The position numbers and the translations under genes are program-made. Below are positions 1,235-25,600 of a stretch of DNA of 64,000 nucleotides, in pieces. The notes under the pieces were generated by a model that made no database searches, was not told the origin of the DNA, and was given only the letters and a program-made list of their open reading frames with translations. Origin of the DNA: Paragordius varius (Eukaryota; Animalia; Nematomorpha). Location of the stretch: NCBI GenBank assembly GCA_964247055.1, contig OZ176053.1:13082001-13146000 (forward strand). The letters are read 5' to 3'. Position 1 is the stretch's first letter; each line of letters starts with the position of its first letter.

Positions 1235-4200
1235 ACTTTATAAATTAATGTATAAAACTAGTCGTATCAATAAGTCGCATCAATACTCAAGTTAAACTTA
1301 TCCTTAAAAATCGGATATTGGTCCCCGGTGAACAAAATAATTTTTTATACATTCTCTTAGCAAGACTACATCAAAATATAAAGATAGTTTGACAAACTCT
1401 TTCATATCCGATTTTTACAACGATACTTTAAAAATTAATGTATTAAACTAGTCGCATCAATACTCAAGTTAAACTTTGTCCTTAAAAATCGGATATTGGT
1501 CACCGGTAAACAAAATAATTTTTTATACATTCTCTTAGCAAGACTACATCAAATAATAGAGATAGTTTGACAAACTCTTTCATATCCGATTTTTACAACG
1601 ATACTTTATAAATTAATGTATAAAACTAGTCGTATCAATAAGTCGCATCAATACTCAAGTTAAACTTTGTCCTTAAAAATCGGATATTGGTTACCGGTGA
1701 ACAAAATAATCTTTTATACATTCTCTTAGTAAGACTACATCAAATTATAGAGATAGTTTGACAAACTCTTTCATATCCGAATTTTACAACGATACTTTAA
1801 AAATTATGGTATAACCAGTCGCATCAATACTCAAGTTAAACTTTGTCCTTAAAAATCGGATATTGGTCACCGGTGAACAAAATTATTTTTTATACATTCT
1901 CTTAGTAAGACTACATCAAAATATAGAGATATTTTGACAAACTCTTTCATATCCGATTTTTACAACGATACTTTAAAAATTAATGTGTTAATCTAGTCGC
2001 ATTAATACTCAAGTTAAACTTTGTCCTTAAAAATCGGATATTGGTCACCGGTGAACAAAATAATTTTTTATACATTCTCTTAGTAAGACTACATCAAAAT
2101 ATAGAGATAGTTTGACAAACTCTTTCCATATCCGAATTTTACAACGATACTTTAAAAATTAATGTGTTAAACTAGTCGCATACTCAAGTTAAACTTTGTC
2201 CTTAAAAATCGGATATTGGTCACCGGTGAACAAAATTATTTTTTATACATTCTCTTAGTAAGACTACATTAAAATATAGAGATAGTTTGACAAACTCTTT
2301 CATATCCGATTTTTACAACGATACTTTAAAAATTAATGTATAAAACTAGTCGTATCAATAAATCGTATCAATAGTCAAGTTAAACTTTGTCCTTAAAAAT
2401 CGGATATTGGTCACCGGTGAACAAAATTATTTTTTATACATTCTCTTAGTAGGACTACATTAAAATATAGAGATAGTTTGGCAAACTCTTTCCTATCCGG
2501 ATTGTACAACGATACTTTAAAAATTAATGTATTAAACTAGTCGCATCAATACTCAAGTTAAACTTTGTCCTTAAAAATCGGATATTGGTCATCGGTGAAC
2601 AAAATAATTTTTTATACATTCTCTTAGCAAGACTACATCAAATAATAGAGATAGTTTGACAAACTCTTTCATATCCGATTATTACAACAATACTTTATAT
2701 ATTAATGTATAAAACTAATCGTATCAATAAGTCGCATCAATACTCAAGTTAAACTTTGTCCTTAAAAATCGGATATTGGTCACCGGTGAACAAAATAATT
2801 TTTTATACATTCTCTTAGTAAGACTACATCAAAATATAGAGATAGTTTGACAAACTCTTTCATATCCGGATTGTACAACGATACTTTAAAAATTATGGTA
2901 TTAAACCAGTCGCATCAATACTCAAGTTAAACTTTGTCCTTAAAAATCGGATATTGGTCACCGGTGAACAAAATTACTTTTTATACATTCTCTTAGTAAG
3001 ACTACATCAAAATATAGAGATAGTTTGACAAACTCTTTCATATCCGATTTTTACAACGATACTTTAAAAATTAATGTATTAAACTAGTCGCATCAATATT
3101 CAAGTTAAACTTTGTCCTTAAAAATCGGATATTGGTCACCGGTGAACAAAATAATTTTTTATACATTCTCTTAGCAAGACTACATCAAATAATAGAGATA
3201 GTTTGACAAACTCTTTCATATCCGATTTTTACAACGATACTTTATAAATTAATGTATAAAACTAGTCGTATCAATAAGTCGCATCAATACTCAAGTTAAA
3301 CTTTGTCCTTAAAAATCGGATATTGGTCACCGGTGAACAAAATAATCTTTTATACATTCTCTTAGTAAGACTACATCAAATTATAGAGATAGTTTGACAA
3401 ACTCTTTCATATCCGATTTTTACAACGATACTTTAAAAATTATGGTATAACCAGTCGCATCAATACTCAAGTTAAACTTTGTCCTTAAAAATCGGATATT
3501 GGTCACCGGTGAACAAAATTATTTTTTATACATTCTCTTAGCAAGACTACATCAAATAATAGAGATAGTTTGACAAACTCCTTCATATCCGATTTTTACA
3601 ACGATACTTTATAAATTAATGTATAAAACTAGTCGTATCAATAAGTCGCATCAATACTCAAGTTAAACTTTGTCCTTAAACATCGGATATTGGTCACCGG
3701 TGAACAAAATAATTTTTTATACATTCTCTTAGTAAGACTACATCAAAATATAGAGATAGTTTGACAAACTCTTTCATATCTGATTTTTACAACGATACTT
3801 TAAAAATTATGGTATTAAACCAGTCGCATCAATACTCAAGTTAAACTTTGTCCTTAAAAATCGGATATTGGTCACCGGTGAACAAAATAATTTTTTATAC
3901 ATTCTCTTAGCAAGACTACATCAAATAATAGAGATAGTTTGACAAACTCTTTCATATCCGATTTTTACAACGATACTTTATAAATTAATGTATAAAACTA
4001 GTCGTATCAATAAGTCGCATCAATACTCAAGTTAAACTTTGTCCTTAAAAATCGGATATTGGTCACCGGTGAACAAAATAATCTTTTATACATTCTCTTA
4101 GTAAGACTACATCAAATTATAGAGATAGTTTGACAAACTCTTTCATATCCGATTTTTACAACGATACTTTAAAAATTATGGTATAACCAGTCGCATCAAT

Positions 4201-6119
4201 ACTCAAGTTAATCTTTGTCCTTAAAAATCGGATATTGGTCACCGGTGAACAAAATTATTTTTTATACATTCTCTTAGTAAGACTACATCAAAATATAGAG
4301 ATATTTTGACAAACTCTTTCATATCCGATTTTTACAACGATACTTTAAAAATTAATGTGTTAAACTAGTCGCATTAATACTCAAGTTAAACTTTGTCCTT
4401 AAAAATCGGATATTGGTCACCGGTGAACAAAATTATTTTTTATACATTCTCTTAGTAAGACTACATCAAAATATAGAGATATTTTGACAAACTCTTTCAT
4501 ATCCGATTTTTACAACGATACTTTATAAATTAATGTATAAAACTAGTCGTATCAATAAGTCGCATCGTTAAACTTTGTCCTTAAAAATCGGATATTGGTC
4601 ACCGGTGAACAAAATAATCTTTTATACATTCTCTTAGTAAGACTACATTAAATTATAGAGATAGTTTGACAAACTCTTTCATATCCGATTTTTACAACGA
4701 TACTTTAAAAATTATGGTATAACCAGTCGCATCAATACTCAAGTTAAACTTTGTCCTTAAAAATCGGATATTGGTCACCGGTGAACAAAATTATTTTTTA
4801 TACATTCTCTTAGTAAGACTACATCAAAATATAGAGATATTTTGACAAACTCTTTCATATCCGATTTTTACAACGATACTTTAAAAATTTATGTATTAAA
4901 CTAGTCGCATCAATACTCAAGTTAAACTTTGTCCTTAAAAATCGGATATTGGTCATCGGTGAACAAAATAATTTTTTATACATTCTCTTAGCAAGACTAC
5001 ATCAAATAATAGAGATAGTTTGACAAACTCTTTATATCCGATTATTACAACAATACTTTATATATTAATGTATAAAACTAATCGTATCAATAAGTCGCAT
5101 CAATACTCAAGTTAAACTTTGTCCTTAAAAATCGGATATTGGTCACCGGTGAACAAAATAATTTTTTATACATTCTCTTAGTAAGACTACATCAAAATAT
5201 AGAGATAGTTTGACAAACTCTTTCATATCCGGATTGTACAACGATACTTTAAAAATTATGGCATTAAACCAGTCGCATCAATACTCAAGTTAAACTTTGT
5301 CCTTAAAAATCGGATATTGGTCACCGGTGAACAAAATAATTTTTTATACATTCTCTTAGCAAGACTACATCAAATAATAGAGATAATTTGACAAACTCTT
5401 TCATATCCGATTTTTACAACGATACTTTATAAATTAATGTATAAAACTAGTCGTATCAATAAGTCGCATCAATACTCAAGTTAAACTTTGTCCTTAAAAA
5501 TCGGATATTGGTTACCAGTGAACAAAATAATCTTATATACATTCTCTTAGTAAGACTACATCAAATTATAGAGATAGTTTGACAAACTCTTTCATATCCG
5601 ATTTTTACAACGATACTTTAAAAATTATGGTATAACCAGTCGCATCAATACTCAAGTTAAACTTTGTCCTTAAAAATCGGATATTGGTCACCGGTGAACA
5701 AAATAATTTTTTATACATTCTCTTAGCAAGACTACATCAAATAATAGAGATAGTTTGACAAACTCCTTCATATCCGATTTTTACAACGATACTTTATAAA
5801 TTAATGTATAAAACTAGTCGTATCAATAAGTCGCATCAATACTCAAGTTAAACTTTGTCCTTAAAAATCGGATATTGGTCACCGGTGAACAAAATAATCT
5901 TTTATACATTCTCTTAGTAAGACTACATCAAATTATAGAGATAGTTTGACAAACTCTTTCATATCCGATTTTTACAACGATACTTTAAAAATTATGGTAT
6001 AACCAGTCGCATCAATACTCAAGTTAAACTTTGTCCTTAAAAATCGGATATTGGTCACCGGTGAACAAAATTATTTTTTATACATTCTCTTAGCAAGACT
6101 ACATCAAATAATAGAGATA

Positions 6120-6790
6120 GTTTGAAAAATTCTTTCATATCCGATTTTTACAACGATACTTTAAAAATTTATGTATAAAACTAGTCGCATCAATACTCAA
6201 GTTAAACTTTGTCCTTAAAAATCGGATATTGGTCACCGGTGAACAAAACTATTTTTTATACATTCTTTTAGTAAGACTACATTAAAATATAGAGATAGTT
6301 TGACAAATTCTTTCATATCCGATTTTTACAACGATACTTTAAAAATTTATGTATAAAACTAGTCGCATCAATACTCAAGTTAAACTTTGTCAAAAATCGG
6401 ATATTGGTCACCGGTGAACAAAACTATTTTTTATAATTCTTTTAGTATGACTACATCAAAATATAGAGATAGTTTGACAAACTCTTTATTATCTGATTTT
6501 TACAACGATACTTTAAAAATTAATGTATAATTTAGCATACGACAATATTCAAGTTAAACTTTGTCCTTAAAAATCGGATATTGGTAACCGGTGAACGAAA
6601 CTATTTTCTATACATTCTCTTAGAAGGACTACATTAAAATATAGAGATAGTTTGACAAACTCTTTCATATCCGATTTTTACAACGATACTTTAAAAATTA
6701 ATGTATAAAACTAATCGCATCAATACTCAAGTTAAACTTTGTCTTTAAAAATCGGATATTGGTCACCGGTGAACAAAATTATTTTTTATA
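6120..6790 (+). repeat. Block of ~4 diverged monomers
   Basis: Dense private changes such as TTATAATTCTTTTAGTATGA, TAATGTATAATTTAGCATACGACAATATTC and GGTAACCGGTGAACGAAACTATTTTCTA. Inverted copy at ~20670-21340. Confidence 0.9.
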
Positions 6791-9700
6791 CATTCTCTTA
6801 GTAAGACTACATGAAAATATAGAGATAGTTTGACAGACTCTTTCATATCCGATTTTTACAACGATACTTTATAAATTAATGTATTAAACTAGTCGCATCA
6901 ATATTCAAGTTAAACTTTGTCCTTAAAACTCGGATATTGGTCACGGTGAACAAAATAATTTTTTATACATTCTCTTAGCAAGACTACATCAAATAATAGA
7001 GATAGTTTGACAAACTCCTTCATATCCGATTTTTACAACGATACTTTATAAATTAATGTATAAAACTAGTCGTATCAATAAGTCGCATCAATACTCAAGT
7101 TAAACTTTGTCCTTAAACATCGGATATTGGTCACCGGTGAACAAAATAATTTTTTATACATTCTCTTAGTAAGACTACATCAAAATATAGAGATAGTTTG
7201 ACAAACTCTTTCATATCTGATTTTTACAACGATACTTTAAAAATTATGGTATTAAACCAGTCGCATCAATACTCAAGTTAAACTTTGTCCTTAAAAATCG
7301 GATATTGGTCACCGGTGAACAAAATAATTTTTTATACATTCTCTTAGCAAGACTACATCAAATAATAGAGATAGTTTGACAAACTCTTTCATATCCGATT
7401 TTTACAACGATACTTTATAAATTAATGTATAAAACTAGTCGTATCAATAAGTCGCATCAATACTCAAGTTAAACTTTGTCCTTAAAAATCGGATATTGGT
7501 TACCGGTGAACAAAATAATCTTTTATACATTCTCTTAGTAAGACTACATCAAATTATAGAGATAGTTTGACAAACTCTTTCATATCCGAATTTTACAACG
7601 ATACTTTAAAAATTATGGTATAACCAGTCGCATCAATACTCAAGTTAAACTTTGTCCTTAAAAATCGGATATTGGTCACCGGTGAACAAAATTATTTTTT
7701 ATACATTCTCTTAGTAAGACTACATCAAAATATAGAGATATTTTGACAAACTCTTTCATATCCGATTTTTACAACGATACTTTAAAAATTAATGTGTTAA
7801 TCTAGTCGCATTAATACTCAAGTTAAACTTTGTCCTTAAAAATCGGATATTGGTCACCGGTGAACAAAATAATTTTTTATACATTCTCTTAGTAAGACTA
7901 CATCAAAATATAGAGATAGTTTGACAAACTCTTTCTATATCCGAATTTTACAACGATACTTTAAAAATTAATGTGTTAAACTAGTCGCATACTCAAGTTA
8001 AACTTTGTCCTTAAAAATCGGATATTGGTCACCGGTGAGCAAAATTATTTTTTATACATTCTCTTAGTAAGACTACATTAAAATATAGAGATAGTTTGAC
8101 AAACTCTTTCATATCCGATTTTTACAACGATACTTTAAAAATTAATGTATAAAACTAGTCGTATCAATAAATCGTATCAATACTCAAGTTAAACTTTGTC
8201 CTTAAAAATCGGATATTGGTCACCGGTGAACAAAATTATTTTTTATACATTCTCTTAGTAGGACTACATTAAAATATAGAGATATTTTGACAAACTCTTT
8301 CATATCCGATTTTTACAACGATACTTTAAAAATTAATGTGTTAAACTAGTCGCATTAATAATCAAGTTAAACTTTGTCCTTAAAAATCGGATATTGGTCA
8401 CCGGTGAACAAAATAATTTTTTATACATTCTCTTAGTAAGACTACATTAAAATATAGAGATAGTTTGACAAACTCTTTCATATCCGATTTTTACAACGAT
8501 ACTTTAAAAATTAATGTATAAAACTAGTCGTATCAATAAATCGTATCAATACTCAAGTTAAACTTTGTCCTTAAAAATCGGATATTGGTCACCGGTGAAC
8601 AAAATTATTTTTTATACATTCTCTTAGTAGGACTACATTAAAATATAGAGATAGTTTGGCAAACTCTTTCCTATCCGGATTGTACAACGATACTTTAAAA
8701 ATTAATGTATTAAACTAGTCGCATCAATACTCAAGTTAAACTTTGTCCTTAAAAATCGGATATTGGTCATCGGTGAACAAAATAATTTTTTATACATTCT
8801 CTTAGCAAGACTACATCAAATAATAGAGATAGTTTGACAAACTCTTTCATATCCGATTATTACAACAATACTTTATATATTAATGTATAAAACTAATCGT
8901 ATCAATAAGTCGCATCAATACTCAAGTTAAACTTTGTCCTTAAAAATCGGATATTGGTCACCGGTGAACAAAATAATTTTTTATACATTCTCTTAGTAAG
9001 ACTACATCAAAATATAGAGATAGTTTGACAAACTCTTTCATATCCGGATTGTACAACGATACTTTAAAAATTATGGTATTAAACCAGTCGCATCAATACT
9101 CAAGTTAAACTTTGTCCTTAAAAATCGGATATTGGTCACCGGTGAACAAAATTACTTTTTATACATTCTCTTAGTAAGACTACATCAAAATATAGAGATA
9201 GTTTGACAAACTCTTTCATATCCGATTTTTACAACGATACTTCTAAAATTAATGTATTAAACTAGTCGCATCAATATTCAAGTTAAACTTTGTCCTTAAA
9301 AATCGGATATTGGTCACCGGTGAACAAAATAATTTTTTATACATTCTCTTAGCAAGACTACATCAAATAATAGAGATAGTTTGACAAACTCTTTCATATC
9401 CGATTTTTACAACGATACTTTATAAATTAATGTATAAAACTAGTCGTATCAATAAGTCGCATCAATACTCAAGTTAAACTTTGTCCTTAAAAATCGGATA
9501 TTGGTCACCGGTGAACAAAATAATCTTTTATACATTCTCTTAGTAAGACTACATCAAATTATAGAGATAGTTTGACAAACTCTTTCATATCCGATTTTTA
9601 CAACGATACTTTAAAAATTATGGTATAACCAGTCGCATCAATACTCAAGTTAAACTTTGTCCTTAAAAATCGGATATTGGTCACCGGTGAACAAAATTAT

Positions 9701-12700
9701 TTTTTATACATTCTCTTAGCAAGACTACATCAAATAATAGAGATAGTTTGACAAACTCCTTCATATCCGATTTTTACAACGATACTTTATAAATTAATGT
9801 ATAAAACTAGTCGCATCAATATTCAAGTTAAACTTTGTCCTTAAAAATCGGATATTGGTCACCGGTGAACAAAATAATTTTTTATACATTCTCTTAGCAA
9901 GACTACATCAAATAATAGAGATAGTTTGACAAACTCTTTCATATCCGATTTTTACAACGATACTTTATAAATTAATGTATAAAACTAGTCGTATCAATAA
10001 GTCGCATCAATACTCAAGTTAAACTTTGTCCTTAAAAATCGGATATTGGTCACCGGTGAACAAAATAATCTTTTATACATTCTCTTAGTAAGACTACATG
10101 AAAATATAGAGATAGTTTGACAGACTCTTTCATATCCGATTTTTACAACGATACTTTATAAATTAATGTATTAAACTAGTCGCATCAATATTCAAGTTAA
10201 ACTTTGTCCTTAAAACTCGGATATTGGTCACGGTGAACAAAATAATTTTTTATACATTCTCTTAGCAAGACTACATCAAATAATAGAGATAGTTTGACAA
10301 ACTCCTTCATATCCGATTTTTACAACGATACTTTATAAATTAATGTATAAAACTAGTCGTATCAATAAGTCGCATCAATACTCAAGTTAAACTTTGTCCT
10401 TAAACATCGGATATTGGTCACCGGTGAACAAAATAATTTTTTATACATTCTCTTAGTAAGACTACATCAAAATATAGAGATAGTTTGACAAACTCTTTCA
10501 TATCTGATTTTTACAACGATACTTTAAAAATTATGGTATTAAACCAGTCGCATCAATACTCAAGTTAAACTTTGTCCTTAAAAATCGGATATTGGTCACC
10601 GGTGAACAAAATAATTTTTTATACATTCTCTTAGCAAGACTACATCAAATAATAGAGATAGTTTGACAAACTCTTTCATATCCGATTTTTACAACGATAC
10701 TTTATAAATTAATGTATAAAACTAGTCGTATCAATAAGTCGCATCAATACTCAAGTTAAACTTTGTCCTTAAAAATCGGATATTGGTTACCGGTGAACAA
10801 AATAATCTTTTATACATTCTCTTAGTAAGACTACATCAAATTATAGAGATAGTTTGACAAACTCTTTCATATCCGAATTTTACAACGATACTTTAAAAAT
10901 TATGGTATAACCAGTCGCATCAATACTCAAGTTAAACTTTGTCCTTAAAAATCGGATATTGGTCACCGGTGAACAAAATTATTTTTTATACATTCTCTTA
11001 GTAAGACTACATCAAAATATAGAGATATTTTGACAAACTCTTTCATATCCGATTTTTACAACGATACTTTAAAAATTAATGTGTTAATCTAGTCGCATTA
11101 ATACTCAAGTTAAACTTTGTCCTTAAAAATCGGATATTGGTCACCGGTGAACAAAATAATTTTTTATACATTCTCTTAGTAAGACTACATCAAAATATAG
11201 AGATAGTTTGACAAACTCTTTCTATATCCGAATTTTACAACGATACTTTAAAAATTAATGTGTTAAACTAGTCGCATACTCAAGTTAAACTTTGTCCTTA
11301 AAAATCGGATATTGGTCACCGGTGAACAAAATTATTTTTTATACATTCTCTTAGTAAGACTACATTAAAATATAGAGATAGTTTGACAAACTCTTTCATA
11401 TCCGATTTTTACAACGATACTTTAAAAATTAATGTATAAAACTAGTCGTATCAATAAATCGTATCAATACTCAAGTTAAACTTTGTCCTTAAAAATCGGA
11501 TATTGGTCACCGGTGAACAAAATTATTTTTTATACATTCTCTTAGTAGGACTACATTAAAATATAGAGATATTTTGACAAACTCTTTCATATCCGATTTT
11601 TACAACGATACTTTAAAAATTAATGTGTTAAACTAGTCGCATTAATAATCAAGTTAAACTTTGTCCTTAAAAATCGGATATTGGTCACCGGTGAACAAAA
11701 TAATTTTTTATACATTCTCTTAGTAAGACTACATTAAAATATAGAGATAGTTTGACAAACTCTTTCATATCCGATTTTTACAACGATACTTTAAAAATTA
11801 ATGTATAAAACTAGTCGTATCAATAAATCGTATCAATACTCAAGTTAAACTTTGTCCTTAAAAATCGGATATTGGTCACCGGTGAACAAAATTATTTTTT
11901 ATACATTCTCTTAGTAGGACTACATTAAAATATAGAGATAGTTTGGCAAACTCTTTCCTATCCGGATTGTACAACGATACTTTAAAAATTAATGTATTAA
12001 ACTAGTCGCATCAATACTCAAGTTAAACTTTGTCCTTAAAAATCGGATATTGGTCATCGGTGAACAAAATAATTTTTTATACATTCTCTTAGCAAGACTA
12101 CATCAAATAATAGAGATAGTTTGACAAACTCTTTCATATCCGATTATTACAACAATACTTTATATATTAATGTATAAAACTAATCGTATCAATAAGTCGC
12201 ATCAATACTCAAGTTAAACTTTGTCCTTAAAAATCGGATATTGGTCACCGGTGAACAAAATAATTTTTTATACATTCTCTTAGTAAGACTACATCAAAAT
12301 ATAGAGATAGTTTGACAAACTCTTTCATATCCGGATTGTACAACGATACTTTAAAAATTATGGTATTAAACCAGTCGCATCAATACTCAAGTTAAACTTT
12401 GTCCTTAAAAATCGGATATTGGTCACCGGTGAACAAAATTACTTTTTATACATTCTCTTAGTAAGACTACATCAAAATATAGAGATAGTTTGACAAACTC
12501 TTTCATATCCGATTTTTACAACGATACTTCTAAAATTAATGTATTAAACTAGTCGCATCAATATTCAAGTTAAACTTTGTCCTTAAAAATCGGATATTGG
12601 TCACCGGTGAACAAAATAATTTTTTATACATTCTCTTAGCAAGACTACATCAAATAATAGAGATAGTTTGACAAACTCTTTCATATCCGATTTTTACAAC

Positions 12701-13099
12701 GATACTTTATAAATTAATGTATAAAACTAGTCGTATCAATAAGTCGCATCAATACTCAAGTTAAACTTTGTCCTTAAAAATCGGATATTGGTCACCGGTG
12801 AACAAAATAATCTTTTATACATTCTCTTAGTAAGACTACATCAAATTATAGAGATAGTTTGACAAACTCTTTCATATCCGATTTTTACAACGATACTTTA
12901 AAAATTATGGTATAACCAGTCGCATCAATACTCAAGTTAAACTTTGTCCTTAAAAATCGGATATTGGTCACCGGTGAACAAAATTATTTTTTATACATTC
13001 TCTTAGCAAGACTACATCAAATAATAGAGATAGTTTGACAAACTCCTTCATATCCGATTTTTACAACGATACTTTATAAATTAATGTATAAAACTAGTC
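6790..13099 (+). repeat. Near-tandem duplication, period 3287 bp (18 monomers): ~6790-9812 / ~10077-13099
   Basis: TGACAGACTC 6831/10118, TTTGGCAAA 8659/11946, CTTCTAAAA 9243/12530, all offset 3287. Confidence 0.9.
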
Positions 13100-14329
13100 G
13101 TATCAATAAGTCGCATCAATACTCAAGTTAAACTTTGTCCTTAAACATCGGATATTGGTCACCGGTGAACAAAATAATTTTTTATACATTCTCTTAGTAA
13201 GACTACATCAAAATATAGAGATAGTTTGACAAACTCTTTCATATCTGATTTTTACAACGATACTTTAAAAATTATGGTATTAAACCAGTCGCATCAATAC
13301 TCAAGTTAAACTTTGTCCTTAAAAATCGGATATTGGTCACCGGTGAACAAAATAATTTTTTATACATTCTATTAGCAAGACTACATCAAATAATAGAGAT
13401 AGTTTGACAAACTCTTTCATATCCGATTTTTACAACGATACTTTATAAATTAATGTATAAAACTAGTCGTATCAATAAGTCGCATCAATACTCAAGTTAA
13501 ACTTTGTCCTTAAAAATCGGATATTGGTCACCGGTGAACAAAATAATCTTTTATACATTCTCTTAGTAAGACTACATCAAATTATAGAGATAGTTTGACA
13601 AACTCTTTCATATCCGATTTTTACAACGATACTTTAAAAATTATGGTATAACCAGTCGCATCAATACTCAAGTTAATCTTTGTCCTTAAAAATCGGATAT
13701 TGGTCACCGGTGAACAAAATTATTTTTTATACATTCTCTTAGTAAGACTACATCAAAATATAGAGATATTTTGACAAACTCTTTCATATCCGATTTTTAC
13801 AACGATACTTTAAAAATTAATGTGTTAAACTAGTCGCATTAATACTCAAGTTAAACTTTGTCCTTAAAAATCGGATATTGGTCACCGGTGAACAAAATTA
13901 TTTTTTATACATTCTCTTAGTAAGACTACATCAAAATATAGAGATATTTTGACAAACTCTTTCATATCCGATTTTTACAACGATACTTTATAAATTAATG
14001 TATAAAACTAGTCGTATCAATAAGTCGCATCGTTAAACTTTGTCCTTAAAAATCGGATATTGGTCACCGGTGAACAAAATAATCTTTTATACATTCTCTT
14101 AGTAAGACTACATCAAATTATAGAGATAGTTTGACAAACTCTTTCATATCCGATTTTTACAACGATACTTTAAAAATTATGGTATAACCAGTCGCATCAA
14201 TACTCAAGTTAAACTTTGTCCTTAAAAATCGGATATTGGTCACCGGTGAACAAAATTATTTTTTATACATTCTCTTAGTAAGACTACATCAAAATATAGA
14301 GATATTTTGACAAACTCTTTCATATCCGA

Positions 14330-16950
14330 TTTTTACAACGATACTTTAAAAATTTATGTATTAAACTAGTCGCATCAATACTCAAGTTAAACTTTGTCCT
14401 TAAAAATCGGATATTGGTCATCGGTGAACAAAATAATTTTTTATACATTCTCTTAGCAAGACTACATCAAATAATAGAGATAGTTTGACAAACTCTTTAT
14501 ATCCGATTATTACAACAATACTTTATATATTAATGTATAAAACTAATCGTATCAATAAGTCGCATCAATACTCAAGTTAAACTTTGTCCTTAAAAATCGG
14601 ATATTGGTCACCGGTGAACAAAATAATTTTTTATACATTCTCTTAGTAAGACTACATCAAAATATAGAGATAGTTTGACAAACTCTTTCATATCCGGATT
14701 GTACAACGATACTTTAAAAATTATGGCATTAAACCAGTCGCATCAATACTCAAGTTAAACTTTGTCCTTAAAAATCGGATATTGGTCACCGGTGAACAAA
14801 ATAATTTTTTATACATTCTCTTAGCAAGACTACATCAAATAATAGAGATAATTTGACAAACTCTTTCATATCCGATTTTTACAACGATACTTTATAAATT
14901 AATGTATAAAACTAGTCGTATCAATAAGTCGCATCAATACTCAAGTTAAACTTTGTCCTTAAAAATCGGATATTGGTTACCAGTGAACAAAATAATCTTT
15001 TATACATTCTCTTAGTAAGACTACATCAAATTATAGAGATAGTTTGACAAACTCTTTCATATCCGATTTTTACAACGATACTTTAAAAATTATGGTATAA
15101 CCAGTCGCATCAATACTCAAGTTAAACTTTGTCCTTAAAAATCGGATATTGGTCACCGGTGAACAAAATAATTTTTTATACATTCTCTTAGCAAGACTAC
15201 ATCAAATAATAGAGATAATTTGACAAACTCTTTCATATCCGATTTTTACAACGATACTTTATAAATTAATGTATAAAACTAGTCGTATCAATAAGTCGCA
15301 TCAATACTCAAGTTAAACTTTGTCCTTAAAAATCGGATATTGGTTACCAGTGAACAAAATAATCTTTTATACATTCTCTTAGTAAGACTACATCAAATTA
15401 TAGAGATAGTTTGACAAACTCTTTCATATCCGATTTTTACAACGATACTTTAAAAATTATGGTATAACCAGTCGCATCAATACTCAAGTTAAACTTTGTC
15501 CTTAAAAATCGGATATTGGTCACCGGTGAACAAAATAATTTTTTATACATTCTCTTAGCAAGACTACATCAAATAATAGAGATAGTTTGACAAACTCTTT
15601 CATATCCGATTTTTACAACGATACTTTATAAATTAATGTATAAAACTAATCGTATCAATAAGTCGCATCAATACTCAAGTTAAACTTTGTCCTTAAAAAT
15701 CGGATATTGGTTACCAGTGAACAAAATAATCTTTTATACATTCTCTTAGTAAGACTACATCAAATTATAGAGATAGTTTGACAAACTCTTTCATATCCGA
15801 TTTTTACAACGATACTTTAAAAATTTATGTATTAAACTAGTCGCATCAATACTCAAGTTAAACTTTGTCCTTAAAAATCGGATATTGGTCATCGGTGAAC
15901 AAAATAATTTTTTATACATTCTCTTAGCAAGACTACATCAAATAATAGAGATAGTTTGACAAACTCTTTATATCCGATTATTACAACAATACTTTATATA
16001 TTAATGTATAAAACTAATCGTATCAATAAGTCGCATCAATACTCAAGTTAAACTTTGTCCTTAAAAATCGGATATTGGTCACCGGTGAACAAAATAATTT
16101 TTTATACATTCTCTTAGTAAGACTACATCAAAATATAGAGATAGTTTGACAAACTCTTTCATATCCGGATTGTACAACGATACTTTAAAAATTATGGCAT
16201 TAAACCAGTCGCATCAATACTCAAGTTAAACTTTGTCCTTAAAAATCGGATATTGGTCACCGGTGAACAAAATAATTTTTTATACATTCTCTTAGCAAGA
16301 CTAAATCAAATAATAGAGATAATTTGACAAACTCTTTCATATCCGATTTTTACAACGATACTTTATAAATTAATGTATAAAACTAGTCGTATCAATAAGT
16401 CGCATCAATACTCAAGTTAAACTTTGTCCTTAAAAATCGGATATTGGTTACCAGTGAACAAAATAATCTTTTATACATTCTCTTAGTAAGACTACATCAA
16501 ATTATAGAGATAGTTTGACAAACTCTTTCATATCCGATTTTTACAACGATACTTTAAAAATTATGGTATAACCAGTCGCATCAATACTCAAGTTAAACTT
16601 TGTCCTTAAAAATCGGATATTGGTCACCGGTGAACAAAATAATTTTTTATACATTCTCTTAGCAAGACTACATCAAATAATAGAGATAGTTTGACAAACT
16701 CTTTCATATCCGATTTTTACAACGATACTTTATAAATTAATGTATAAAACTAGTCGTATCAATAAGTCGCATCAATACTCAAGTTAAACTTTGTCCTTAA
16801 AAATCGGATATTGGTCACCGGTGAACAAAATAATCTTTTATACATTCTCTTAGTAAGACCACATCAAATTATAGAGATAGTTTGACAAACTCTTTCATAT
16901 CCGATTTTTACAACGATACTTTAAAAATTATGGTATAACCAGTCGCATCA
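14330..16950 (+). repeat. 1471-bp (8-mer) duplication containing three tandem 367-bp dimers (176+191)
   Basis: ATGGCATT marker 14727/16198 (1471). TTACCAGTG marker 14982/15349/15716 (367 each). Confidence 0.82.
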
Positions 16951-17377
16951 ATACTCAAGTTAAACTTTGTCTTTAAAAATCGGATATTGGTCACCGGTGA
17001 ACAAAATTATTTTTTATACATTCTCTTAGTAAGACTACATGAAAATATAGAGATAGTTTGACAGACTCTTTCATATCCGATTTTTACAACGATACTTTAT
17101 AAATTAATGTATTAAACTAGTCGCATCAATATTCAAGTTAAACTTTGTCCTTAAAACTCGGATATTGGTCACGGTGAACAAAATAATTTTTTATACATTC
17201 TCTTAGCAAGACTACATCAAATAATAGAGATAGTTTGACAAACTCCTTCATATCCGATTTTTACAACGATACTTTATAAATTAATGTATAAAACTAGTCG
17301 TATCAATAAGTCGCATCAATACTCAAGTTAAACTTTGTCCTTAAACATCGGATATTGGTCACCGGTGAACAAAATAA

Positions 17378-18341
17378 TTTTTTATACATTCTCTTAGTAA
17401 GACTACATCAAAATATAGAGATAGTTTGACAAACTCTTTCATATCTGATTTTTACAACGATACTTTAAAAATTATGGTATTAAACCAGTCGCATCAATAC
17501 TCAAGTTAAACTTTGTCCTTAAAAATCGGATATTGGTCACCGGTGAACAAAATAATTTTTTATACATTCTCTTAGCAAGACTACATCAAATAATAGAGAT
17601 AGTTTGACAAACTCTTTCATATCCGACTTTTACAACGATACTTTATAAATAAATGTATAAAACTAGTCGTATCAATAAGTCGCATCAATACTCAAGTTAA
17701 ACTTTGTCCTTAAAAATCGGATATTGGTTACCGGTGAACAAAATAATCTTTTATACATTCTCTTAGTAAGACTACATCAAAATATAGAGATAGTTTGACA
17801 AACTCTTTCATATCCGACTTTTACAACGATACTTTATAAATAAATGTATTAAACTAGTCGCATCAATAAGTCGCATCAATACTCAAGTTAAACTTTGTCC
17901 TTAAAAATCGGATATTGGTCACCGGTGAACAAAATTATTTTTTATACATTCTCTTAGTAAGACTACATCAAAATATAGAGATAGTTTGACAAACTCTTTC
18001 ATATCTGATTTTTACAACGATACTTTAAAAATTATGGTATTAAACCAGTCGCATCAATACTCAAGTTAAACTTTGTCCTTAAAAATCGGATATTGGTCAC
18101 CGGTGAACAAAATAATTTTTTATACATTCTCTTAGCAAGACTACATCAAATAATAGAGATAGTTTGACAAACTCTTTCATATCCGACTTTTACAACGATA
18201 CTTTATAAATAAATGTATAAAACTAGTCGTATCAATAAGTCGCATCAATACTCAAGTTAAACTTTGTCCTTAAAAATCGGATATTGGTTACCGGTGAACA
18301 AAATAATCTTTTATACATTCTCTTAGTAAGACTACATCAAA
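17378..18341 (+). repeat. 560-bp (3-mer) duplication next to the junction
   Basis: ATATCTGATT 17441/18001; ATCCGACTTT 17627/18187. Confidence 0.85.
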
Positions 18342-18404
18342 TTATAGAGATAGTTTGACAAACTCTTTCATATCCGATTTTTACAACGATACTTTAAAAA
18401 TTAA

Positions 18405-18430
18405 TGTGTTAAACTAGTCGCATTAATACT
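18405..18430. other. Array inversion junction; 25-nt unpaired spacer between inverted arms
   Basis: ...ACTTTAAAAATTAA (ends 18404) [TGTGTTAAACTAGTCGCATTAATAC] TTAATTTTTAAAGT... (starts 18430). The flanks are reverse complements. Confidence 0.97.
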
Positions 18431-18589
18431 TAATTTTTAAAGTATCGTTGTAAAAATCGGATATGAAAGAGTTTGTCAAACTATCTCTATATTTTGATGT
18501 AGTCTTGCTAAGAGAATGTATAAAAAATTATTTTGTTCACCGGTGACCAATATCCGATTTTTAAGGACAAAGTTTAACTTGAGTATTCA

Positions 18590-21500
18590 TGCGACTAGTT
18601 TAATACATTAATTTTTAAAGTATCGTTGTAAAAATCGGATATGGAAAGAGTTTGTCAAACTATCTCTATATTTTGATGTAGTCTTACTAGAATGTATAAA
18701 AAATTATTTTGTTCACCGGTGACCAATATCCGATTTTTAAGGACAAAGTTTAACTTGAATATTGATGCGACTAGTTTAATACATTAATTTTTAATCGGAT
18801 ATGAAAGAGTTTGTCAAACTATCTCTATATTTTGAAGTAGTCTTACTAAGAGAATGTATAAAAAATAATTTTGTTCGGTGACCAATATCCGATTTTTAAG
18901 GACAAAGTTTAACTTGAGTATTGATGCGACTAGTTTAACACATTAATTTTTAAAGTATCGTTGTAAAAATCGGATATGGAAAGAGTTTGTCAAACTATCT
19001 CTATATTTTGATGTAGTCTTACTAAGAGAATGTATAAAAAATTATTTTGTTCACCGGTGACCAATATCCGATTTTTAAGGACAAAGTTTAACTTGATTAT
19101 TAATGCGACTAGTTTAACACATTAATTTTTAAAGTATCGTTGTAAAAATCGGATATGAAAGAGTTTGTCAAAATATCTCTATATTTTAATGTAGTCCTAC
19201 TAAGAGAATGTATAAAAAATAATTTTGTTCACCGGTGACCAATATCCGATTTTTAAGGACAAAGTTTAACTTGAGTATTGATACGATTTATTGATACGAC
19301 TAGTTTTATACATTAATTTTTAAAGTATCGTTGTAAAAATCGGATATGAAAGAGTTTGTCAAACTATCTCTATATTTTAATGTAGTCTTACTAAGAGAAT
19401 GTATAAAAAATAATTTTGTTCACCGGTGACCAATATCCGATTTTTAAGGACAAAGTTTAACTTGAGTATGCGACTAGTTTAACACATTAATTTTTAAAGT
19501 ATCGTTGTAAAATTCGGATATAGAAAGAGTTTGTCAAACTATCTCTATATTTTGATGTAGTCTTACTAAGAGAATGTATAAAAAATTATTTTGTTCACCG
19601 GTGACCAATATCCGATTTTTAAGGACAAAGTTTAACTTGAGTATTAATGCGACTAGATTAACACATTAATTTTTAAAGTATCGTTGTAAAAATCGGATAT
19701 GAAAGAGTTTGTCAAAATATCTCTATATTTTGATGTAGTCTTACTAAGAGAATGTATAAAAAATAATTTTGTTCACCGGTGACCAATATCCGATTTTTAA
19801 GGACAAAGTTTAACTTGAGTATTGATGCGACTGGTTATACCATAATTTTTAAAGTATCGTTGTAAAATTCGGATATGAAAGAGTTTGTCAAACTATCTCT
19901 ATAATTTGATGTAGTCTTACTAAGAGAATGTATAAAAGATTATTTTGTTCACCGGTAACCAATATCCGATTTTTAAGGACAAAGTTTAACTTGAGTATTG
20001 ATGCGACTTATTGATACGACTAGTTTTATACATTAATTTATAAAGTATCGTTGTAAAAATCGGATATGAAAGAGTTTGTCAAACTATCTCTATTATTTGA
20101 TGTAGTCTTGCTAAGAGAATGTATAAAAAATTATTTTGTTCACCGGTGACCAATATCCGATTTTTAAGGACAAAGTTTAACTTGAGTATTTATGCGACTG
20201 GTTTAATACCATAATTTTTAAAGTATCGTTGTAAAAATCAGATATGAAAGAGTTTGTCAAACTATCTCTATATTTTGATGTAGTCTTACTAAGAGAATGT
20301 ATAAAAAATTATTTTGTTCACCGGTGACCAATATCCGATGTTTAAGGACAAAGTTTAACTTGAGTATTGATGCGACTTATTGATACGACTAGTTTTATAC
20401 ATTAATTTATAAAGTATCGTTGTAAAAATCGGATATGAAGGAGTTTGTCAAACTATCTCTATTATTTGATGTAGTCTTGCTAAGAGAATGTATAAAAAAT
20501 TATTTTGTTCACCGTGACCAATATCCGAGTTTTAAGGACAAAGTTTAACTTGAATATTGATGCGACTAGTTTAATACATTAATTTATAAAGTATCGTTGT
20601 AAAAATCGGATATGAAAGAGTCTGTCAAACTATCTCTATATTTTCATGTAGTCTTACTAAGAGAATGTATAAAAAATAATTTTGTTCACCGGTGACCAAT
20701 ATCCGATTTTTAAAGACAAAGTTTAACTTGAGTATTGATGCGATTAGTTTTATACATTAATTTTTAAAGTATCGTTGTAAAAATCGGATATGAAAGAGTT
20801 TGTCAAACTATCTCTATATTTTAATGTAGTCCTTCTAAGAGAATGTATAGAAAATAGTTTCGTTCACCGGTTACCAATATCCGATTTTTAAGGACAAAGT
20901 TTAACTTGAATATTGTCGTATGCTAAATTATACATTAATTTTTAAAGTATCGTTGTAAAAATCAGATAATAAAGAGTTTGTCAAACTATCTCTATATTTT
21001 GATGTAGTCATACTAAAAGAATTATAAAAAATAGTTTTGTTCACCGGTGACCAATATCCGATTTTTGACAAAGTTTAACTTGAGTATTGATGCGACTAGT
21101 TTTATACATAAATTTTTAAAGTATCGTTGTAAAAATCGGATATGAAAGAATTTGTCAAACTATCTCTATATTTTAATGTAGTCTTACTAAAAGAATGTAT
21201 AAAAAATAGTTTTGTTCACCGGTGACTAATATCCGATTTTTAAGGACAAAGTTTAACTTGAGTATTGATGCGACTAGTTTTATACATAAATTTTTAAAGT
21301 ATCGTTGTAAAAATCGGATATGAAAGAATTTGTCAAACTATCTCTATTATTTGATGTAGTCTTGCTAAGAGAATGTATAAAAAATAATTTTGTTCACCGG
21401 TGACCAATATCCGATTTTTAAGGACAAAGTTTAACTTGAGTATTGATGCGACTGGTTATACCATAATTTTTAAAGTATCGTTGTAAAAATCGGATATGAA

Positions 21501-24500
21501 AGAGTTTGTCAAACTATCTCTATAATTTGATGTGGTCTTACTAAGAGAATGTATAAAAGATTATTTTGTTCACCGGTGACCAATATCCGATTTTTAAGGA
21601 CAAAGTTTAACTTGAGTATTGATGCGACTTATTGATACGACTAGTTTTATACATTAATTTATAAAGTATCGTTGTAAAAATCGGATATGAAAGAGTTTGT
21701 CAAACTATCTCTATTATTTGATGTAGTCTTGCTAAGAGAATGTATAAAAAATTATTTTGTTCACCGGTGACCAATATCCGATTTTTAAGGACAAAGTTTA
21801 ACTTGAGTATTGATGCGACTGGTTTAATGCCATAATTTTTAAAGTATCGTTGTACAATCCGGATATGAAAGAGTTTGTCAAACTATCTCTATATTTTGAT
21901 GTAGTCTTACTAAGAGAATGTATAAAAAATTATTTTGTTCACCGGTGACCAATATCCGATTTTTAAGGACAAAGTTTAACTTGAGTATTGATGCGACTTA
22001 TTGATACGATTAGTTTTATACATTAATATATAAAGTATTGTTGTAATAATCGGATATAAAGTTTGTCAAACTATCTCTATTATTTGATGTAGTCTTGCTA
22101 AGAGAATGTATAAAAAATTATTTTGTTCACCGATGACCAATATCCGATTTTTAAGGACAAAGTTTAACTTGAGTATTGATGCGACTAGTTTAATACATAA
22201 ATTTTTAAAGTATCGTTGTAAAAATCGGATATGAAAGAGTTTGTCAAAATATCTCTATATTTTGATGTAGTCTTACTAAGAGAATGTATAAAAAATAATT
22301 TTGTTCACCGGTGACCAATATCCGATTTTTAAGGACAAAGTTTAACTTGAGTATTGATGCGACTGGTTATACCATAATTTTTAAAGTATCGTTGTAAAAA
22401 TCGGATATGAAAGAGTTTGTCAAACTATCTCTATAATTTGATGTAGTCTTACTAAGAGAATGTATAAAAGATTATTTTGTTCACCGGTGACCAATATCCG
22501 ATTTTTAAGGACAAAGTTTAACGATGCGACTTATTGATACGACTAGTTTTATACATTAATTTATAAAGTATCGTTGTAAAAATCGGATATGAAAGAGTTT
22601 GTCAAAATATCTCTATATTTTGATGTAGTCTTACTAAGAGAATGTATAAAAAATAATTTTGTTCACCGGTGACCAATATCCGATTTTTAAGGACAAAGTT
22701 TAACTTGAGTATTAATGCGACTAGTTTAACACATTAATTTTTAAAGTATCGTTGTAAAAATCGGATATGAAAGAGTTTGTCAAAATATCTCTATATTTTG
22801 ATGTAGTCTTACTAAGAGAATGTATAAAAAATAATTTTGTTCACCGGTGACCAATATCCGATTTTTAAGGACAAAGATTAACTTGAGTATTGATGCGACT
22901 GGTTATACCATAATTTTTAAAGTATCGTTGTAAAAATCGGATATGAAAGAGTTTGTCAAACTATCTCTATAATTTGATGTAGTCTTACTAAGAGAATGTA
23001 TAAAAGATTATTTTGTTCACCGGTGACCAATATCCGATTTTTAAGGACAAAGTTTAACTTGAGTATTGATGCGACTTATTGATACGACTAGTTTTATACA
23101 TTAATTTATAAGGTATTGTTGTAAAATTCGGATATGAAAGAGTTTGTCAAACTATCTCTATTATTTGATGTAGTCTTGCTAAGAGAATGTATAAAAAATT
23201 ATTTTGTTCACCGGTGACCAATATCCGATTTTTAAGGACAAAGTTTAACTTGAGTATTGATGCGACTGGTTTAATACCATAATTTTTAAAGTATCGTTGT
23301 AAAAATCAGATATGAAAGAGTTTGTCAAACTTTCTCTATATTTTGATGTAGTCTTACTAAGAGAATGTATAAAAAATTATTTTGTTCACCGGTGACCAAT
23401 ATCCGATGTTTAAGGACAAAGTTTAACTTGAGTATTGATGCGACTTATTGATACGACTAGTTTTATACATTAATTTATAAAGTATCGTTGTAAAAATCGG
23501 ATATGAAGGAGTTTGTCAAACTATCTCTATTATTTGATGTAGTCTTGCTAAGAGAATGTATAAAAAATAATTTTGTTCACCGGTGACCAATATCCGATTT
23601 TTAAGGACAAAGTTTAACTTGAGTATTGATGCGACTGGTTATACCATAATTTTTAAAGTATCGTTGTAAAAATCGGATATGAAAGAGTTTGTCAAACTAT
23701 CTCTATAATTTGATGTAGTCTTACTAAGAGAATGTATAAAAGATTATTTTGTTCACCGGTGACCAATATCCGATTTTTAAGGACAAAGTTTAACTTGAGT
23801 ATTGATGCGACTTATTGATACGACTAGTTTTATACATTAATTTAAAGAGTATCGTTGTAAAAATCGGATATGAAAGAGTTTGTCAAACTATCTCTATTAT
23901 TTGATGTAGTCTTGCTAAGAGAATGTATAAAAAATTATTTTGTTCACCGGTGACCAATATCCGATTTTTAAGGACAAAGTTTAACTTGAATATTGATGCG
24001 ACTAGTTTAATACATTAATTTTTAAAGTATCGTTGTAAAAATCGGATATGAAAGAGTTTGTCAAACTATCTCTATATTTTGATGTAGTCTTACTAAGAGA
24101 ATGTATAAAAAGTAATTTTGTTCACCGGTGACCAATATCCGATTTTTAAGGACAAAGTTTAACTTGAGTATTGATGCGACTGGTTTAATACCATAATTTT
24201 TAAAGTATCGTTGTACAATCCGGATATGAAAGAGTTTGTCAAACTATCTCTATATTTTGATGTAGTCTTACTAAGAGAATGTATAAAAAATTATTTTGTT
24301 CACCGGTGACCAATATCCGATTTTTAAGGACAAAGTTTAACTTGAGTATTGATGCGACTTATTGATACGATTAGTTTTATACATTAATATATAAAGTATT
24401 GTTGTAATAATCGGATATGAAAGAGTTTGTCAAACTATCTCTATTATTTGATGTAGTCTTGCTAAGAGAATGTATAAAAAATTATTTTGTTCACCGATGA

Positions 24501-25600
24501 CCAATATCCGATTTTTAAGGACAAAGTTTAACTTGAGTATTGATGCGACTAGTTTAATACATTAATTTTTAAAGTATCGTTGTAAAAATCGGATATGAAA
24601 GAGTGTCAAACTATCTCTATATTTTGATGTAGTCTTACTAAGAGAATGTATAAAAAATAATTTTGTTCACCGGTGACCAATATCCGATTTTTAAGGACAA
24701 AGTTTAACTTGAGTATTGATACGATTTATTGATACGACTAGTTTTATACATTAATTTTTAAAGTATCGTTGTAAAAATCGGATATGAAAGAGTTTGTCAA
24801 ACTATCTCTCTTTTTTAATGTAGTCTTACTAAGAGAATGTATAAAAAATAATTTTGTTCACCGGTGACCAATATCCGATTTTTAAGGACAAAGTTTAACT
24901 TGAGTATGCGACTAGTTTAACACATTAATTTTTAAAGTATCGTTGTAAAATTCGGATATGGAAAGAGTTTGTCAAACTATCTCTATATTTTGATGTAGTC
25001 TTACTAAGAGAATGTATAAAAAATTATTTTGTTCACCGGTGACCAATATCCGATTTTTAAGGACAAAGTTTAACTTGAGTATTAATGCGACTAGATTAAC
25101 ACATTAATTTTTAAAGTATCGTTGTAAAAATCGGATATGAAAGAGTTTGTCAAAATATCTCTATATTTTGATGTAGTCTTACTAAGAGAATGTATAAAAA
25201 ATAATTTTGTTCACCGGTGACCAATATCCGATTTTTAAGGACAAAGTTTAACTTGAGTATTGATGCGACTGGTTATACCATAATTTTTAAAGTATCGTTG
25301 TAAAATTCGGATATGAAAGAGTTTGTCAAACTATCTCTATAATTTGATGTAGTCTTACTAAGAGAATGTATAAAAGATTATTTTGTTCACCGGTAACCAA
25401 TATCCGATTTTTAAGGACAAAGTTTAACTTGAGTATTGATGCGACTTATTGATACGACTAGTTTTATACATTAATTTATAAAGTATCGTTGTAAAAATCG
25501 GATATGAAAGAGTTTGTCAAACTATCTCTATTATTTGATGTAGTCTTGCTAAGAGAATGTATAAAAAATTATTTTGTTCACCGGTGACCAATATCCGATT
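18590..25600 (-). repeat. Inverted homolog of left-arm blocks (1-~910 and ~1500-8430)
   Basis: Position p pairs with 19501-p for p=1-~780. Position p pairs with 27458-p for p=~6000-8430. Ordered markers continue to left ~1700 / right ~25400. Confidence 0.9.

Follow-up and report, generated by a model that had tools for sequence, protein, structure and literature searches.

A strand switch in a 64-kb satellite array, read as the probable inner junction of a fold-back-type inverted duplication

Fold-back inverted duplications have been described among human inv-dup rearrangements (PMC3907307) and as foldback inversions in yeast (PMC10622511), in both of which a direct copy, a non-duplicated spacer and an inverted copy follow one another and a short inverted microhomology is found at the end of the spacer. 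In the human cases the spacers measure 766–70,466 bp and the inverted microhomologies 2–8 bp (PMC3907307). Strand changes are also known from satellite DNA. In Tribolium, multi-kb subarrays of opposite orientation meet at inversion sites to give macro-dyads capable of forming long hairpins, and in Tribolium madens these sites consist of diverged subunits, are conserved in thousands of copies, as a single event amplified later on, and have been confirmed on raw HiFi reads (PMC13081366). For human beta-satellite, HSat3 and alpha-satellite, the accessible part of a recent preprint reports that strand switches are frequent and scale in number with array length, and its authors take them to be by-products, stochastic in nature, of expanding arrays (bioRxiv 10.64898/2026.07.22.740206).

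The window analyzed here, the whole stretch of 64 kb, is a single AT-rich animal satellite of 178/191-bp monomers that changes strand once. TRF returns a period of 178 bp (97 and 251 copies) and, at equal score, one of 369 bp (178 + 191), which points to a dimer as higher-order period; with head-to-tail monomers at a constant period over many kb, the array is tandem satellite DNA with higher-order structure. According to TRF, anchors, and GC skew, the left arm (positions 1–18422) runs forward and holds ~100 monomers of 178/191 bp with the 369-bp dimer period. The right arm (18423–64000) is assigned to the reverse strand by anchors and GC skew and holds ~250 monomers up to the window end. All 101 anchors before 18288 are forward and all 251 after 18541 are reverse, the GC skew is negative until ~18 kb and positive in the right arm, and the consensus of the forward arm is that of the reverse arm after rotation. 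No further orientation switch is present in the 64 kb (0 wrong-strand anchors, 0 wrong-strand pieces of at least 24 bp), nor does the window contain an ORF of 90 aa or more or an Rfam family at gathering score. The satellite is extremely abundant in the public reads of organism A, with 16,545 to 233,851 contigs matched per run; metagenome contigs scanned with a monomer 26-mer and with the motif pair at 80–90 bp spacing gave no match, and neither did the literature when searched with the satellite's sequence strings.

The monomer carries a 14-bp perfect inverted repeat at fixed spacing, both arms of which are consensus in 252 of 346 monomers. Across the junction, forward copies of this motif (18271–18284, 18451–18464 and 18629–18642) alternate with reverse-complement copies (18370–18383, the last before the junction, and 18550–18563), and the starts and spacings (99, 81, 99, and 79 bp) are exactly those that the earlier note had listed. 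The first copy past the junction thus starts 81 bp after the preceding start, a shift of +2 bp from the usual 79. The earlier note's account of the center of the head-to-head junction, a 25-nt loop around 18417 containing ACTAGT, is confirmed by a mirror-center scan and by the pairing of the arms: in ungapped comparison the center at 18417.0 gives 247 of 400 matches versus 101–158 at all other centers tried, and the arms pair outward from 18404/18430, leaving 18405–18429 unpaired. The ACTAGT palindrome (18413–18418) has its center at 18415.5, 0.5 bp from the motif-pair axis at 18416.0 and 1.5 bp to the left of the junction center, which lies 1 bp from the motif-pair axis. Together the flanks make a local palindrome (18268–18566) with arms of ~145 bp and a few mismatches that is predicted to be capable of hairpin or cruciform formation, the DNA fold prediction being −142.5 kcal/mol (z = −36). 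Sub-threshold matches to plant miRNA hairpin models at the junction, on both strands, were discarded as merely reflecting this palindrome.

The join itself coincides with one of the monomer's short inverted repeats, which reads GTATT/AATAC in the consensus and flanks ACTAGT. In the junction copy the left half of this quasi-palindrome reads GTGTTAA (18406–18412, + strand; consensus GTATTAA) and the right half TTAATAC (18423–18429, + strand), the latter being the microhomology common to the forward monomer and the inverted copy. The breakpoint is ambiguous inside 18423–18430, so that the join reads equally as 1 bp of microhomology (T) or as 7 bp (TTAATAC) with one A lost; a TAATAC microhomology with one base missing, as previously proposed, is therefore a valid reading and not the sole one. 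In either reading an inverted microhomology stands at the end of the spacer, as in fold-back inverted duplications. The 24-mer 18406–18429 is an ordinary monomer haplotype, also found forward at 4357 and 13822 and at at least 25 sites in the reverse arm, and the perfect 7-bp pair GTATTAA/TTAATAC, made by the TTAATAC variant (C to T), occurs in 4 monomers. Short imperfect inverted repeats are the strand-switch sites of quasi-palindrome template-switch mutation, which classically corrects a few bases within a hairpin; the site here is of the same kind, but the switch ran on for kilobases. An inversion of the NAHR type was considered and rejected: the join is outside both the 14-bp motif pair and the 10-bp palindrome TCACCGGTGA, and the repeat at which it lies is one of 5–7 bp with one base missing or unmatched.

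Comparison of the array with itself by monomer-level edit distances, together with blastn and alignment, places the counterpart of the right arm far from the junction. The segment abutting the junction (B′, 18423–19500, reverse) is an inverted copy of the first 1078 bp of the window (B, 1–1078, forward; blastn identity 99.35% over 1079 bp), of which only the part within the window is visible, and the blastn and monomer matches leave between them a forward spacer C of 17.3 kb (1079–18422). Monomers R0–R4 differ from F4–F0 by 2, 1, 0, 0, and 0 edits. Among these, the 159-bp monomer at 18749–18907 is 1 edit away from F3 and 21 edits from its next best match; the left arm has its only 159-bp monomer at 594–752, and the 159-bp length is unique in each arm. 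A further mirror block on the reverse strand (19456–25422) sets R5–R36 colinear with F42–F9 (~1665–8000) at 0–3 edits per monomer, and identity with the left arm fades past ~26702, the mean minimum distance being 0.48 edits for R0–R43 versus 2.65 for R44–R69. The arms adjoining the junction are not mirror images in monomer order, the lengths outward from the junction being 191, 178, 191, and 191 bp on the left and 176, 159, 179, and 178 bp on the right; they diverge after ~150 bp, with a 13-bp indel between them ~190 bp from the center. One 191-bp monomer of the left arm occupies 18071–18261. In a three-way alignment most informative sites, beginning with the first at 18427, group the right arm with B and not with the left arm beside it. 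We rejected sequencing error as the origin of the private variants of B, since, of four variant strings looked up, three are found again in other monomers (CACCGGGGACC in 53 copies of the right arm, ATTTGGTTCACC in 11, GAGTAATCATG in 2). The layout is that of a fold-back inverted duplication, in which the spacer ends where the inverted copy begins.

These data suggest, with moderate confidence, that a fold-back-type inverted duplication, A-B-C-B′-A′, has its inner junction at the switch, and that the near-preservation of motif phase is a by-product. The forward array would run to 18422–18430 and then continue as the reverse complement of 1078 back to 1, presumably past the window start. Such an event would most likely have begun when a 3′ end broke or stalled within a monomer linker; using an inverted microhomology of a few bases, this end would have annealed to the same or the sister strand ~97 monomers upstream and then been extended; the candidate microhomology is the GTATTAA/TTAATAC quasi-palindrome of the monomer. 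As the monomers share one register, a join at a monomer inverted repeat centers itself near the axis of that repeat, whichever monomers pair. The repeat putatively used here and the axis of the 14-bp motifs are 1.5 bp apart, and with one base lost the spacing would change by only 2 bp, so that the near-kept phase would follow geometrically from where the microhomology lies. The 17.3-kb spacer fits this type of event, as it falls inside the 0.77–70 kb range reported for human fold-backs (PMC3907307).

The right arm also holds features that fit less simple histories. B′ could derive from another B-like block elsewhere in the array, because R5–R36 also mirror F42–F9 and near-identical blocks abound. 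Over its first 143 bp the right arm shows 3 differences from B and 4 from the mirror of the adjacent left arm, and this stretch has exact matches among monomers far down the right arm; given the differences from B and the distant matches, the junction may have undergone conversion afterwards or have had a more complex origin. The same junction might have arisen from a spacerless, hairpin-primed fold-back followed by loss of ~17.3 kb of the right arm through in-register unequal exchange, or from a two-break inversion by end joining between already duplicated blocks. A local fold-back could be primed by a 7-bp stem with a 10-nt loop (GTGTTAA ... TTAATAC), tandem arrays do lose and gain whole blocks in register, of which the duplicated blocks of the window itself are an illustration, and the first 143 bp are about equally close to both possible templates. 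We nevertheless regard these histories as rather improbable: they require one extra event, most informative sites from 18427 on ally the right arm to B and not to its neighbor on the left, and a two-break inversion alone leaves unexplained the unique 159-bp monomer found once per arm in mirror order.

A strand change within near-identical repeats may also be an artifact, produced when a long read is chimeric or the assembly graph is followed along a wrong path, in which case there would be no real change of strand. The array is rich in identical or nearly identical blocks of 0.4–1.1 kb (0–3 score points lost over 368–1082 bp) and hence hard to assemble, and the 18.4 kb of the visible left arm correspond to roughly a single long read. 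The junction is known from the assembly, the public-read contigs over the satellite being ~70–90 bp long in the four runs compared; none is shown bridging 18405–18429, and no strand-changing joint appears among those listed from these short contigs. A fold-back chimeric read, however, mirrors directly from the turn, and here the arms diverge after ~150 bp and the source is 17.3 kb away. The satellite is moreover too weakly self-complementary to overlap falsely with its reverse strand, N runs are absent from the window, and inverted microhomology is present at the join, as in biological fold-backs (PMC3907307). An assembly artifact is thus possible but, in our judgment, unlikely.

The earlier note had offered a different reading, namely that the monomer's own pseudo-symmetry directed the switch and that a protein or nucleosome lattice keyed to the motif would pass it almost unperturbed. 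On such a model the dyad directs strand switches to its axes, where inversions would recur and preserve the lattice, through mutational bias or through selection against flips that are out of phase. Several observations are in line with this proposal: the junction center is just 1 bp from the motif-pair axis, with 81 versus 79 bp between motif starts, the join is on the inverted repeat flanking ACTAGT, and a 13-bp duplication found in the array begins exactly at the ACTAGT center, a hint of a fragile site. The pseudo-symmetry of the monomer holds for the 14-bp inverted repeat and for small palindromes that lie no more than 1 bp from either of its axes (consensus 66 and 155) but goes no further. 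In ungapped comparison, 70 of 178 positions are self-complementary about the motif axis, 28 of which are the motifs themselves, and the best axis of the whole monomer reaches 78/178 (P = 0.36 against 2000 shuffles, likewise ungapped), so that the monomer as a whole is not dyad-symmetric (quasi-palindromic) above chance. Neither do the 14-bp arms show compensatory change, with 0 symmetric variant pairs against 94 asymmetric monomers, and the longest palindrome of the monomer, the 10-bp TCACCGGTGA, was not used by the junction. Although the join does fall on a short monomer repeat, what the right arm copies lies 17.3 kb upstream and is not the same monomer; the turn was not made around the dyad of one monomer, and a template switch directed by monomer pseudo-symmetry is not supported.

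The lattice itself proves to be loose. The alternation at 99 and 79 bp that had been described stands for the forward-to-reverse spacing, which is 99 bp in 240 of ~256 pairs, but the reverse-to-forward spacing is 79 (110 cases), 92 (72), 77 (45), or 91 bp (13). All common indels are confined to this reverse-to-forward linker (consensus 122–178), where a 13-bp insertion is present in 35% of monomers and a 2-bp deletion in 16%, and motif spacing varies there by up to 15 bp. The motif register is indeed kept across the junction to within 2 bp, but as such insertions and deletions are common in the very linker in which the junction lies, the lattice is not rigid, the shift is smaller than normal variation, and 81 bp is inside the normal range. 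Nothing in the near-kept phase points to selection or direction.

On monomer coordinates a strand switch can be written as s = (forward + reverse breakpoint) mod 178; if the consensus is counted from CTTTGTCC, the motif axis has the value s = 130. A shift of at most 2 bp from the motif axis has a chance of 2.8% under a uniform null. The chance of landing as close to the axis is 2.8–3.9% under the uniform null (3.9% for a distance within 3 bp) and 9–15% under a microhomology null, before any correction for the feature having been picked afterwards. Inverted microhomologies of at least 5 bp are somewhat enriched near the motif axis, with 5 of 33 pairs within 3 bp of it (15% versus 4% if uniform), an enrichment that is only modest. 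With a single junction and a linker of variable length, the near-phase join could be chance, and we consider a dyad-directed switch quite improbable.

As an inverted duplication of the fold-back type, our preferred reading, the junction is an ordinary member of an already known kind, and it shares with the human and yeast cases the order of direct copy, spacer, and inverted copy, the inverted microhomology at the spacer end and the range of spacer length (PMC3907307, PMC10622511). It differs from them in lying within a tandem satellite, where a single-copy spacer is so only in a relative sense, and in that no terminal deletion, dicentric stage or telomere capture is visible in the window, the far ends of the duplication being outside it. 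The likeness to the Tribolium macro-dyads is in the meeting of multi-kb opposite subarrays at a site capable, here by prediction, of a long hairpin; unlike the sites of Tribolium madens, the present one is a single junction in 64 kb, has ordinary monomer sequence and comes from an assembly alone (PMC13081366). The human arrays differ in that their breakpoints are not placed on monomer coordinates in the accessible part of that report (bioRxiv 10.64898/2026.07.22.740206).

Satellite strand switches are now found in many complete assemblies and have seldom been placed on monomer coordinates. The junction described here is one well-described case with a plausible known mechanism, and it supplies the null model for a genome-wide test (2.8–3.9% uniform, 9–15% microhomology-weighted). 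It is conceivable, though we think it very improbable, that satellites with a fixed inverted-repeat pair invert preferentially at the two axes of the pair, leaving a motif-keyed lattice undisturbed. If this were true, arrays could flip strand and build multi-kb macro-dyads while any chromatin or protein lattice that follows the motif stayed intact, and no example outside beetles would have been mapped before the present one. If many independent junctions of this satellite sat on motif axes, the architecture of the monomer would be tied to array-scale rearrangement and to chromatin phasing.

The window is a single tandem satellite throughout its 64 kb, AT-rich (28% G+C), with a period of 178 bp and an equally strong period of 369 bp that represents a 178-bp plus a 191-bp monomer; no ORFs of at least 90 amino acids and no Rfam families were found in the 64 kb. 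Strand-specific anchors place forward monomers no further than 18288 and reverse monomers no earlier than 18541, no wrong-strand pieces of 24 bp or more occur anywhere else in the window, and the GC skew changes sign where the anchors switch. There is therefore exactly one orientation switch in the window, a head-to-head junction. The satellite itself is extremely abundant in public runs of one organism (16,545 to 233,851 short contigs per run), and an aquatic metagenome run contains one 201-bp contig matching 17886–18086 with 13 mismatches, which may come from a related strain or animal.

Re-measurement of the motif starts, mirror centre, loop and ACTAGT bore out all of the coordinates in the earlier note. 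The 14-bp motif TAAAAATCGGATAT and its reverse complement alternate across the junction with starts at 18271, 18370, 18451, 18550 and 18629. The ungapped mirror centre is at 18417.0, within an unpaired centre of 18405–18429, ACTAGT occupies 18413–18418 (centre 18415.5), and the flanking motif pair has its axis at 18416.0. The junction is thus displaced by 1 bp from the motif-pair axis and by 1.5 bp from the ACTAGT centre, so that the motif spacing over it is 81 bp, not 79. The predicted single-stranded DNA fold of 18268–18566 is a near-perfect hairpin with arms of ~145 bp each (−142.5 kcal/mol, z = −36).

Outward from the junction, monomer lengths are 191, 178, 191 and 191 on the left and 176, 159, 179, 178 and 191 on the right, so neither arm mirrors the other. 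Contigs from public runs cover the satellite in pieces of ~70–90 bp, and none is shown to bridge the loop. Against a simple assembly artefact, a fold-back read would give arms mirrored from the turn, and such mirroring is absent; the satellite is also too little self-complementary for a false overlap, and there are no N runs. We consider an artefact unlikely.

The partner of the right arm lies at the start of the window, as 18423–19500 (B′) matches the reverse complement of 1–1078 (B) at 99.35% identity. A 159-bp monomer is present once in the left arm (F3, counting forward monomers from the window start; 594–752) and once at the mirror position in the right arm (R1, counting reverse monomers from the junction; 18749–18907), the two being 1 edit apart with the next best match at 21 edits. 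It has a 19-bp deletion taking most of one 14-bp motif (...TTTTTAA/TCGGATAT...), and, being unique, is well suited as a marker when reads are checked. Most informative sites of a three-way alignment, beginning with the first at 18427, place the right arm with B and not with the neighbouring left arm. Further out, R5–R36 (19456–25422) are colinear with F42–F9 at 0–3 edits per monomer, and identity to left-arm monomers fades past about 26702. The right-arm subfamily changes at ~26700, where the mean distance to the nearest left-arm monomer is 0.5 edits for R0–R43 versus 2.7 for R44–R69, the latter carrying variants such as CACCGGGGACC (53 copies). The inverted duplication may have its outer end at this change. 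Within the left arm, F40–44 (7474–8371) and F58–62 (10761–11658), offset by 3.3 kb, lose 2 score points (~1 difference) in 898 bp, F0–1 are identical to F61–62, and 4213–5294 has about one difference in 1082 bp from 13678–14759, offset by 9.5 kb. The two offset block pairs point to very recent segmental duplication within the array. Since the left arm itself repeats blocks, the simplest reading of the window is A-B-C-B′-A′, an inverted duplication with its source running from 1078 leftward out of the window and a 17.3-kb spacer C (1079–18422).

B and B′ differ increasingly as the junction is approached, with 0, 0, 0, 1 and 2 edits per monomer followed by three differences and one indel in the last 143 bp. 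All seven differences fall in the 410 bp nearest the junction (667–1078 versus 18423–18834), none in the remaining 666 bp, and at five of the seven the source copy is the non-consensus side. These differences could stem from error-prone synthesis that followed the switch of strand or from gene conversion at a later time. Sequencing error in B was considered and set aside: three of the four variant strings examined are found again in other parts of the array, and later conversion reads better.

At the join, the 24-mer of 18406–18429 is an ordinary monomer haplotype, present in forward orientation also at 4357 and 13822 and, among the matches listed, at no fewer than 25 reverse-arm sites, where it is followed by TCAAG; the forward arm may therefore extend to 18429 or 18430. 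B, in its inverted copy, reads TTAATACATTAAT here. Two readings fit: forward sequence to ...TTAATAC(T) and then TAATTTTT..., with 1-bp microhomology and no base missing, or a switch within the 7-bp TTAATAC common to both copies, in which the next base, an A, was lost. Microhomology with one base missing, as first proposed, is hence compatible with the sequence, but a 1-bp microhomology without loss fits equally. Under both readings the join is at a quasi-palindrome, GTATTAA-10 nt-TCAATAC in the consensus, with its axis 1.5 bp from the motif axis. Four reverse-arm monomers (29442, 30898, 31432 and 37415) carry a perfect 7-bp inverted repeat GTATTAA ... TTAATAC, which has one mismatch in the consensus, and quasi-palindrome correction is a possible origin of these perfect pairs.

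Forward-to-reverse motif spacing is 99 bp (n = 240), and reverse-to-forward spacing is 79 (n = 110), 92 (72), 77 (45) or 91 bp (13). In the monomer alignment, all of the common length changes fall in the reverse-to-forward linker and almost none between the motifs, namely a 13-bp tandem duplication (35% of monomers), a 2-bp deletion (16%) and a 7-bp deletion (about 4%); the linker also has the highest substitution rate of the monomer, peaking at consensus 141–160. The junction falls in this variable linker. That the lattice stays in register across the inversion is arithmetically true but undemanding, as the 2-bp shift is smaller than the ordinary length variation of the array. The 13-bp duplication, AGTCG[C/T]ATCAATA twice (18225–18250, 17856–17881), makes the 191-bp monomer, and its left edge coincides exactly with the ACTAGT centre and its right edge falls within the AATAC microhomology, so the same few bases host both the main indel of the array and the inversion join.

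The motif copies at 10–23 and 109–122 of the 178-bp consensus have axes at 66 and 155, within 1 bp of which lie CTTAgTAAG (61–69) and ACTAGT (152–157). The symmetry of the monomer is this motif pair and these two palindromes, nothing further. Self-complementary positions at the motif axis number 70 of 178, of which the motifs themselves supply 28, and the best axis in the monomer, at 78 of 178, is equalled by 36% of composition-matched shuffles in an ungapped test. In 94 asymmetric monomers one motif arm varies and the other stays consensus, with no symmetric variant pairs; the lack of matching change gives no sign of selection for arm pairing. Symmetry over the monomer as a whole is not supported. 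The monomer looks like a constrained 113-bp unit with 14-bp inverted repeats at its bounds (consensus 10–122) next to a free linker (123–178), a layout reminiscent of transposon-derived repeats that bear terminal inverted repeats.

A head-to-head join is defined by the sum of both breakpoints modulo 178, and a uniform null gives a shift of ≤2 bp in 5/178 cases (2.8%) and of ≤3 bp in 3.9%. With inverted microhomology of at least 5 bp as the null, 5 of 33 consensus pairs lie within 3 bp of the axis (15%), and with at least 4 bp, 9 of 97 do (9%). The monomer's longest palindrome, TCACCGGTGA (10 bp), is 69 bp out of register and unused by the join. Because there is one junction and the feature was picked after seeing it, the near-axis landing is not significant. 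The observation is borne out and the earlier interpretation in part, through a join at a short inverted repeat that flanks ACTAGT; the satellite may keep phase when it inverts, a proposal that these results do not refute.

The junction is most simply read as that of a fold-back-type inverted duplication in a satellite, a kind already known, and its layout, spacer and microhomology are read directly from the window. In the fold-back model of inverted duplications, a 3′ end lying in a monomer's linker would have paired with inverted microhomology ~97 monomers upstream, on the same or sister strand, and then been extended. Human fold-back cases have spacers of 766–70,466 bp (median 3.4 kb) and 2–8 bp of inverted microhomology (PMC3907307), and this junction is typical of them. 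Human beta-satellite, HSat3 and alpha-satellite arrays commonly show strand switches, in numbers that scale with the length of the array, and these have been interpreted as stochastic by-products of its expansion (bioRxiv 10.64898/2026.07.22.740206). Tribolium satellites contain multi-kb 'macro-dyad symmetries' with inversion sites conserved in thousands of copies and confirmed in raw reads (PMC13081366); clustered junctions may thus be one amplified event, so that only junctions differing in sequence count as independent. Throughout a tandem array the microhomology recurs in identical register in each monomer, and the phase outcome is therefore independent of which monomers take part, which is the sound core of the idea that this satellite can invert in phase.
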